DNA from: Setoptus koraiensis
Taxonomy: Eukaryota; Animalia; Arthropoda
Assembly (NCBI GenBank): GCA_048013815.1
Contig: CM106585.1
Span: 19,158,001 to 19,222,000 of the forward strand
DNA length: 64,000 bases
Reading direction: 5' to 3'
Made by a program: the position numbers and the translations under genes. The notes under the pieces were generated by a model. That model had not been told where the DNA came from, did not search any database, and worked only from the letters and a program-made list of their open reading frames with translations. Below, piece by piece: positions 27,139-28,828 of the stretch. Position 1 is the first letter of the stretch. Each line of letters begins with the position of its first letter.

Positions 27139-28828
27139 TTACAGAAAAGTCGATATTTATCCAATGCATAATGCATCATTGGTATCAGTGACTTGATAAC
27201 AATCACAACTTAATTATGCACAATCATGTGAGTTCTTGTTATTCGCAATGAGGGAGAATGTATGACTCATTCGATATGAATCTGCTTAGAGTTGTTTTGT
27301 TTTTGATTGTTCGAAACCGAAATTCGTTATCTTGTCTCGTCTCTATAATGTTGAAAATTATTTGTCAACAACGATTCTACCTGAAAAATGTACGGCCTGT
27401 TCATATTTATCTATATTACTATTGCAGTAATAGTATTGCTAGATTGCACGGAGATAAGCGTGGCTTCACTGTTGATTGAATGCGCGATACATGGGGCATT
27501 TTTTACCTGGTTGGAATTTTCATTGCGGGCGATCTATTAGTCATAGTTTTTGTTTTATCTCTGTTCTGAAACATCCATACTAAGTCCTATATGCGACGAG
27601 CTGGACAGTATATAAGTGATTGACATTTTTCAGACTCATCAAACGCAAGAATTAAGTGTTCAAATAACTTTAAAGAATCTCACCTATTATCATTGTGTCA
27701 AAAAGTTGATTGTGCGACAAATCTGAGACCATGCAAAGTAAAATATTGATTTTCTTGATTCCCTTCTTGGGATTGGCAGCAGGTATGTAGTAGAGACAAT
27801 TTTGTTTCCTTATCGTCAATGACACAATCCATACAGACATTGAATCTTCATGAGTAATTTTTTTTTGTGTGACATTTCATCAGCTACACACTTGGCCAAT
27901 CTAGATTCCATCGACGGCCAACTGTCCGGAGAATCATCGAAAGCCTTATCGGCCAACGACAAAAGTTACAAATGTGACGAATGCTTGACCTTCCTCAAGC
28001 AATTGAAATCGGGCGGAAACATCCGCCATAAACTTATGGAAATCTGTTACTCTGCTTTGCCAGAATTCATTCTTGCCCGCCAGGCAGTTGTGAGTATATT
28101 CTTTTCAGTTGCCAAGATCAAACTGACTTGACTTTGGTCTATTATTGTGTGACTTGACATCATTCATAGAATATAATATTAATACATGCAAAAATGTCAA
28201 TCTCATTTCAACTTAAGTGCCCAACTCTGGTCGCGAAAGTCTCTGCTAGCCTAAGCAATCTAGACGAGAACGCCAATTGTTACGCAATCGGCGTATGTCC
28301 ATCGCCATCGAAGCCCAAGGATAAAGCCGACGATAAATGGGATCAGGCTGACGATTGCTACCGTTGTGCTGGCGTAGTCAGGGTGGCGGGAGACAGCATA
28401 GCAGCCAGACTTCCCGAATATGTTAGAGGAACGGGTTATGCAATAAAAGCTGCTCACATGTCTCAGGTATTAGTTTGGAGATATGCCAGCGAACTTGTAC
28501 GTGAGTTGCAGCTAAACACCGAGACGGAACCCATCGCAGTGAGCAGATATTTGGATGCCTTTTCGAAGCACGAGATTGACGCCAAACACGCGCTAGCTTA
28601 TTGTTATTCGATCAACAAGTGCACCCAGTTCCCATTCCACATGTAATCGAATAAGGAGTGGACAAGTGAAGCAAATGAGACCGCTGAGGACATCGTCAAT
28701 TATTCATTCCATCATTGATAGCGGCTCGCTATTAGCGAATGCTGTCTTCTGACGCCGAAAATGTTTCATTTTGCCAATCCATGCTAATCATGAGATCGAT
28801 AAATAAACCACACTTCTAATACAGAAAA
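27139..28828. repeat. Right arm of the inverted duplication (saposin gene B)
   Basis: See left arm; homology stops at about 27139 internally and 28828 externally. Confidence 0.95.
27731..28646 (+). CDS. Secreted saposin-like protein B (paralogue of A), 228 aa, 3 exons
   Basis: join(27731..27782,27884..28089,28218..28646); exon lengths 52/206/429 identical to copy A; same signal peptide and Cys pattern. Confidence 0.8.

Follow-up and report, generated by a model that had tools for sequence, protein, structure and literature searches.

An inverted pair of genes for an orphan secreted protein is a mosaic of old and young segments, probably shaped by gene conversion

The locus analysed here lies in a 64-kb window, the whole stretch of DNA that we studied, and consists of two genes, A and B, arranged head to head as inverted repeats approximately 3.3 kb apart. 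The two arms, delimited by blastn of the two regions, form an inverted duplication of approximately 1.7 kb in which arm B (27141-28828) pairs with arm A (23339-25103, read as 25103-23339) at 88.8% identity when gaps are counted. At its core is a gapless inverted alignment of 1201 nt with 91% identity (27499-28699 in B, 23468-24668 in A), in which positions in the two copies are related by x_A = 52167 - x_B. The outer flanks of the duplicated unit are 85-93% identical. Gene A (23521-24436, minus strand) is composed of exons 24385-24436, 24078-24283, and 23521-23949, and gene B (27731-28646, plus strand) of exons 27731-27782, which encodes the signal peptide and ends in phase 1, 27884-28089, and 28218-28646; the last exon of each includes the stop codon. 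In both copies, the two introns have GT/AG borders and the reading frame is intact.

The spacer between the arms contains a gene for a trypsin-like protease of the S1A type (25755-26714, plus strand). Another trypsin-like S1A gene lies beyond arm B (29401-30426, minus strand), followed near 31.0-32.1 kb by a third copy that is not a single open reading frame (ORF). For the trypsin, the best named relatives are arthropod and vertebrate proteins with approximately 30-35% identity. On the other side of the pair, there is a CAP-domain ORF (20208-20615). Farther away in the window, we noted an ORF for a small-RNA 2'-O-methyltransferase (HEN1-type) and several long ORFs rich in Gln, Asn, and Ser. 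When eleven ORFs of the window were looked up as exact sequences, none was present in a collection of 15 billion proteins. An Rfam scan gave no match, and the DNA probably comes from an invertebrate animal. Upstream of the signal-peptide exon, A and B share a motif (27517-27546 in B, plus strand; 24621-24650 in A) with three related genes introduced below (C, D1, and D2), and a TATA-like box is found 3' of it, near 27609-27616. Nucleotide-level conservation of both this motif and the signal-peptide exon extends to all five genes, which is a hallmark of families of secreted effectors, venom components, and salivary proteins.

The product of A and B is a secreted protein of approximately 228 residues, in which a hydrophobic signal peptide of 17 residues is followed by two cysteine-stapled domains predicted to be helical. 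Domain 1, which is split by intron 2, contains six cysteines in the order C-x2-C ... C ... C ... C-x5-C, an arrangement found in all five genes. Domain 2, which is encoded wholly within exon 3, has only the outer four and is without the inner pair. The linker between the domains is rich in Pro, Lys, and Asp, and the C terminus is nearly invariant across the whole family. An internal repeat test aligned the C-terminal cysteine motifs of domains 1 and 2 (E value of 1.4e-4 over 11 columns), while the N-terminal halves of the two domains did not align.

The preliminary description of this locus had labeled the two genes as saposin paralogues, a label for which profile and structure searches provided no support. 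Searches, folds, and codon counts were run exon by exon, and domain 1 was therefore examined in pieces, being split by intron 2. For A, B, and C, neither the exon 2 product nor that of exon 3 matched SapB in Pfam, whether at E ≤ 0.01 or at E ≤ 10, with nothing but chance matches returned, and profile searches of the PDB with two alignments returned neither a saposin nor any other relative. AlphaFold2 gave low-confidence models, with a pLDDT of 39 for exon 3 and of 55 for domain 2, the latter being an all-helical prediction with four helices. Foldseek found nothing in the PDB at E ≤ 0.001 and nothing saposin-like, a negative structural result that is weak since AlphaFold2 needs deep alignments of close relatives for fast-evolving saposin-like effectors (PMC13552887). 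The likeness of the product to saposin-like proteins (SAPLIP; Pfam SapB_1/SapB_2) is suggestive at most: it is secreted, has the six-cysteine order in domain 1 and the outer four cysteines in domain 2, and is predicted to be all-helical. It differs from them by the lack of a profile match at E ≤ 10 and of a sequence or fold match in the PDB, as well as by the missing inner cysteine pair in domain 2. Moreover, its cysteine spacings appear shorter than those typical of the saposin family. What suggests a saposin identity is the arrangement of the cysteines, with C-terminal motifs that align between the two domains, together with the predicted helices.

Related proteins are rare. The searched collections contain only three, all from Logan assemblies of two runs (SRR33593474 and SRR33594717). 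Word-indexed searches with exon 3 of B and with a three-sequence profile returned P0001 as the sole match, and P0002 emerged when 1.84 billion representatives were scanned in full with HMMER; a further candidate from that scan, P0003, is a spurious bacterial repeat protein. Scans of JGI metagenomes were blank, both with peptide patterns and with a degenerate pattern covering 41 nt of exon 1, which is conserved. The contigs of the relatives yielded four genes with the same three-exon structure and phases as A and B, namely C (contig L001), C2 (L003), and the tandem direct pair D1 and D2 (L002). C2, which comes from a different run than C and is 97.3% identical to it, forms a near-allelic pair with it.

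Comparison of A and B segment by segment shows how unevenly their differences are distributed. The two copies differ at 5 of 232 nt in the 5' flank, at none of the 52 nt of exon 1, at 1 of 101 nt in intron 1, and at 9 of 128 nt in intron 2, but at 31 of 206 nt in exon 2 and 61 of 429 nt in exon 3. The most recently homogenised tract (27499-28011, plus strand; A 24156-24668) comprises the promoter and 5'UTR, exon 1 with intron 1, and the opening 42 codons of exon 2, with 8 differences in 513 nt. These 42 in-frame codons contain a single replacement and have a pS of 0.018. Patch 1 (28012-28083, plus strand; A 24084-24155), which sits between the second and fourth cysteines of domain 1, differs at 29/72 nt and 18/24 aa (pS 0.49, pN 0.38, omega 0.67). 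Intron 2 (28090-28217, plus strand; A 23950-24077) then separates this patch from another old coding segment (28218-28307, plus strand; A 23860-23949), which corresponds to exon 3 codons 1-30 and encodes the C-terminal half of domain 1. This segment has a pS of 0.36 with 6/30 aa changed (omega 0.26). The linker and the start of domain 2 (28308-28421, plus strand) are homogenised, with a pS of 0.04. Patch 2 (28422-28514, plus strand; A 23653-23745) differs at 32/93 nt and 20/31 aa (pS 0.36, pN 0.34, omega 0.93), whereas the C-terminal part (28515-28646, plus strand) differs at 3/43 aa and is of intermediate age (pS 0.16).

All the counts given in the preliminary description for hypervariable patches lying beside near-identical introns could be reproduced, as could the conservation of the cysteines, every one of which is kept in both copies. 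Two features go beyond that description, namely the strong divergence of silent sites within the patches and the additional diverged segment at 28218-28307. The clustering goes far beyond what chance would give. When the 92 coding differences were permuted 20,000 times, the observed windows were never matched, the maxima being 25 differences in a 72-nt window, where 29 are observed, and 29 in a 93-nt window, where 32 are observed. The proposed placement of both patches in the central helices of the domains is in loose agreement with our model for patch 2, which spans helix 2 of domain 2, as predicted, with the loops on either side, in a structure that is itself of low confidence.

The silent sites lead to a different reading of the patches than the amino acids. 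We estimated pS, pN, and omega from Nei-Gojobori counts, exon by exon and excluding the codon divided between exons 1 and 2. For the two patches pooled, A and B have a dS of 0.60, a dN of 0.49, and an omega of 0.81 (bootstrap interval, 0.40-1.63), the probability that omega exceeds 1 being 0.28. Outside the patches dS is 0.066, approximately nine times lower, and the excess of silent change in the patches is significant both versus other silent sites (Fisher p = 1e-5) and versus introns (7e-9). The same is seen in codons whose amino acid is unchanged between A and B, of which 4/15 carry a silent change in the patches and 6/24 in exon 3 codons 1-30, versus 5/130 elsewhere. Conversely, the silent sites of the two coding segments that flank intron 2 are far more diverged than the intron itself (p = 1.5e-6). 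Silent sites therefore carry the same mosaic as the amino acids, a pattern beyond the reach of amino-acid selection acting on a young duplicate. Among all pairs of genes, omega is at most 0.93 in the patches and at most 0.44 outside. The A/B pattern does not show diversifying selection, and the strong diversifying selection that had been put forward for these patches is not demonstrated: both omega values are below 1, the pooled interval spans 1, and the silent sites of the patches are about as diverged as their replacement sites.

The relatives confirm that different segments of A and B have different histories. When A and B are compared with C, 101 of the 114 sites outside the patches have A and B identical and differing from C, while inside the patches the three possible patterns are nearly balanced (17, 23, and 18). 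The site patterns inside and outside differ with a Fisher p of 5e-15, or 6e-7 for third positions alone. The genealogy thus differs between segments, which is a signature of recombination or conversion, and conversion that spares the patches, offered earlier as an alternative reading, fits these data. The pairs that are not homogenised behave otherwise. Their silent divergence is even, with values in the patches and outside of 0.96 and 1.00 for D1-D2 and of 1.06 and 1.38 for B-C, and in these pairs the patches tolerate approximately twice as much replacement, omega being 0.3 versus 0.15 outside. The patches are therefore less constrained parts of the protein rather than mutation hotspots. Furthermore, C and C2 differ at 1/150 patch bases and at 8/120 bases of intron 2, and this near-identity of the patches argues against hypervariability on a short time scale. 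Together, the silent rates of D1-D2 and B-C and the C/C2 comparison lead us to reject hypermutability of the patches as the main cause.

The introns provide the complementary part of the picture. The likeness between the introns of A/B and C, and between those of D1 and D2, is at the level of shuffled sequences, and intron 2 of A/B cannot be aligned with the introns of C, D1, and D2. The introns of this family are thus unconstrained, and the 93-99% identity between the introns of A and B reflects recent shared ancestry; constraint on the introns as a cause of this identity is ruled out. It follows that A and B are a mosaic of segments of different ages, and that the unusual part of this pair is the homogenised remainder, not the patches.

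The explanation we favor, and consider probable, is that A and B are old paralogues that have been partly homogenised by gene conversion, with three coding segments retaining an older divergence. A and B would be old members of an orphan family, arranged as inverted repeats, and repeated short conversion events between the arms, of different ages, would have homogenised most of the 1.7-kb unit. Such events could account for the steps in divergence, from 0-2% between the promoter and the middle of exon 2, to approximately 4-5% in the linker, and to 5-7% in intron 2, the C terminus, and the 3' flank. Patch 1, exon 3 codons 1-30, and patch 2 would have escaped conversion, which would explain their silent divergence of 0.36-0.49 per site. 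Since intron 2 is homogenised between two old segments, short tracts must have stopped at the exon borders. That the old segments end at exon-intron junctions while the intron between them is homogenised suggests that tracts extending farther were either removed by selection or blocked by low identity. In the standard explanation (PMC3924837), tracts overwriting functionally distinct residues would be purged by selection, leaving a peak of divergence that includes linked silent sites, and each copy would thereby keep its own version of helix 2 in both domains. We infer on this basis that selection may protect the patches and that the patches may set target specificity. A more specific proposal, possible but in our view doubtful, is that A and B are a specialised pair in an undescribed, lineage-restricted family of secreted two-domain saposin-like proteins, clustered with secreted trypsins and a CAP-domain protein, in which selection blocks conversion at helix 2 of each domain and so maintains two target specificities on a shared, co-regulated scaffold, A being the newly adapted copy.

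The divergence of the outer flanks, at 7-15%, could instead mean that the duplication is young and that the old segments were imported. According to this explanation, which we regard as unlikely, one of the copies, probably A, later received three exon-confined tracts from a third, diverged paralogue. Several features of the locus are compatible with it, including the 85-93% identity of the outer flanks and the fact that the old segments abut exon-intron junctions beside an intron 2 that is 93% identical; because the introns of diverged members cannot be aligned, exon borders are where imported tracts would be expected to stop. The related sample has several copies of the family (C, D1, and D2), and the patches of B are C-like in protein while those of A are not. 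However, the searches revealed no such donor. A tblastn search gave no third paralogue in the 64-kb window, no protein with A-type patches emerged from the 15 billion proteins searched, and in the patches A shows no greater affinity to D1 or D2 than B does. In addition, such a donor would be only approximately 60% identical within the tract, which makes conversion mechanistically hard.

Point substitution under strong diversifying selection in a recent duplicate pair, for which gall-midge salivary gene families offer precedents (PMC2955719), can draw on a patch dN between A and B (0.49) that is greater than that between B and C (0.31) and on changes unique to A that fall mostly at codon positions 1 and 2. 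We nonetheless find it improbable, not only on account of the omega values and the ninefold excess of silent divergence described above, but also because exon 3 codons 1-30 have old silent sites and yet a conserved protein sequence, and because the patches are the least variable part when C is compared with C2. A local mutational process aimed at these coding stretches, such as error-prone repair or clustered mutation, is a possibility that was raised for the gall-midge genes (PMC2955719) and would agree with an omega close to 1 in the A/B patches. It is very improbable here, since the same segments show no raised silent divergence in D1-D2, B-C, or A-C, silent divergence is lowest in C-C2, and exon 3 codons 1-30 combine a high dS with strong purifying selection. 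Finally, approximately 500 nt of near-perfect identity beside strong divergence is what chimeric assemblies can give, and the inverted duplication might have been made or partly collapsed by the assembler, with alleles or paralogues mixed. We give this hardly any credence, as both copies can be spliced and are neither truncated nor disrupted, each arm is embedded in its own unique flanking sequence with a trypsin gene separating the two, divergence is graded in several steps with no single switch, and neighboring paralogues are also found in the related sample.

The two copies have not evolved symmetrically. In the old segments, with C as a reference, A has 25 changes of its own at the first two codon positions and 6 at the third, while B has 10 and 15, respectively (p = 0.0025), a polarisation that is weak as it relies on four relatives and one window and on silent sites that are near saturation versus C (dS > 1). 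A decomposition of branch lengths gave a higher dN for A than for B with a bootstrap support of 0.95, and the patches of B resemble C at the protein level, which those of A do not. These results suggest that copy A has evolved faster at the protein level, which amounts to asymmetric acceleration and not to proven selection. Either A has gained a new specificity or it evolves under relaxed constraint, two alternatives that are indistinguishable because silent sites are saturated versus C.

The pattern that we describe is already known from opsins and from the salivary genes of gall midges, while the protein family itself is undescribed. Divergence peaks under gene conversion are an established model, developed by Teshima and Innan and exemplified by exon 5 of the red and green opsins (PMC3924837). 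As in opsin-type peaks, the paralogues at our locus are alike, introns included, except for short coding regions that have diverged together with linked silent sites (PMC3924837), and A and B display the features that define such peaks, namely non-coding DNA that is too alike, genealogies that are specific to segments, and raised silent divergence in the peaks. The differences are that here there are three peaks within a gene of less than 1 kb, that the arms are inverted and 3.3 kb apart, and that selection on the peaks is inferred.

The SSSGP families of the Hessian fly offer another parallel. In these families, an "unusual conservation" of the promoter, UTRs, signal-peptide exon, and intron, for which concerted homogenisation was put forward, accompanies a diversified mature region, and dN/dS ranges from 1.1 to 18.8 in moderately diverged pairs (PMC2955719). 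The likeness lies in clustered genes for small secreted proteins, in tandem or inverted, with conserved non-mature parts and a diverged mature coding region. Unlike in SSSGP genes, where the whole mature region is diversified, divergence in A and B is confined to three segments with an omega below or near 1.

Bicycle genes of aphids have many small exons, and all five genes of the present family have three ordinary ones. The effectors they encode have saposin-like folds, and the genes have a distinctive intron-exon structure with a highly variable number of exons (PMC13552887). Like bicycle effectors, the A/B product is secreted, consists of two related cysteine-bearing helical halves (the helices being predicted in our case), and has no similarity to known families; the failure of AlphaFold2 is a further likeness, occurring there when alignments of close relatives are missing (PMC13552887). 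The paired Cys-Tyr-Cys motif of bicycle proteins is not seen in the alignments of the five genes, and no sequence link between the two families was found.

This locus is a compact case of how gene conversion can mislead. The patches suggest an arms race, yet on our reading it is they that carry the true age of the A/B pair, and it is the remainder that has been made younger. The family is an orphan one of secreted proteins, with three relatives in 15 billion proteins; its signal-peptide exon and promoter motif are conserved, and secreted proteases adjoin it. Repertoires of effectors or digestive proteins evolve at loci of this kind. Should selection prove to protect the patches, these would mark the residues responsible for specificity. 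A comparable escape from concerted evolution is described for a CEACAM1 paralogue (PMC7042247), where part of a gene family is homogenised by conversion, a segment escapes, and selection is invoked, the family there being one of vertebrate immunoglobulin-type receptors.

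The inverted genes A and B, which encode secreted cysteine-rich proteins, have probably been homogenised over most of their length, whereas no such effect is seen in a pair of family members lying in direct orientation. These two genes, D1 and D2, are found in tandem on contig L002 from a related sample (3720-4553 and 5909-6754), 1.4 kb apart and next to a tetraspanin-domain gene (7123-7614, minus strand). No homogenisation was seen between D1 and D2: their introns are at the level of shuffled sequence and dS is about 1 throughout. At third codon positions, the homogenised coding segments of both A and B have a G+C of 0.58, compared with 0.44 in their old segments, the coding stretches that escaped homogenisation. 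The higher figure could reflect past GC-biased conversion, although the corresponding segments of C, the family gene on contig L001, differ in the same direction (0.46 versus 0.35).

Two elements are common to all five family genes (A, B, C, D1, and D2). Exon 1, which encodes the signal peptide (27731-27782 in B and 24385-24436 in A), is conserved at the nucleotide level in every one of them, and dS between B and C is about 0.2 in this exon, which offers few sites, versus >1 elsewhere. Upstream, the five genes share a motif of ~30 nt (27517-27546 for B, 24621-24650 for A, about 800-830 of L001 for C, and about 3470-3500 and 5680-5710 of L002 for D1 and D2) as well as a TATA-like box, outside of which their upstream DNA is unalignable. 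The motif and the box are a candidate shared regulatory element. Scanning 1.84 billion representative proteins with the family exon 3 profile also returned P0003, a bacterial-looking protein of 655 aa (E 1.6e-5 across 44 residues) with repeated Cys-Pro-x-Cys-Ala-Gly units, which we judged to be a chance likeness to the C-x2-C-A-G at the start of domain 2.

The window also contains three trypsin-like (S1A) paralogues with 70-80% DNA identity: one in the spacer between the duplicated arms (25755-26714, plus strand) and two on the minus strand (29401-30426 and about 31000-32130). The coding sequence of the last is broken over more than one open frame, reflecting either an intron or degradation of the copy. 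Together with an ORF encoding a CAP/cysteine-rich secretory protein domain (20208-20615, perhaps with 19647-20204, plus strand; Pfam E 1.9e-13), these trypsins make the stretch look like a secreted-protein gene cluster. Elsewhere, an ORF at 57538-58476 (minus strand) is akin to HEN1-type small-RNA 2'-O-methyltransferases (PDB 4xcx, E 3e-41) and had no match in a Pfam scan at E<=0.01. Long Gln/Asn/Ser-rich ORFs, which carry extended poly-Gln tracts and lack a Pfam domain, lie at 5500-7929, 15183-16424, 17301-18491, 35947-39348, 39188-40690, and 54816-56732, all on the plus strand. G+C reaches 54-57% at 6-10 kb, above the remaining window.
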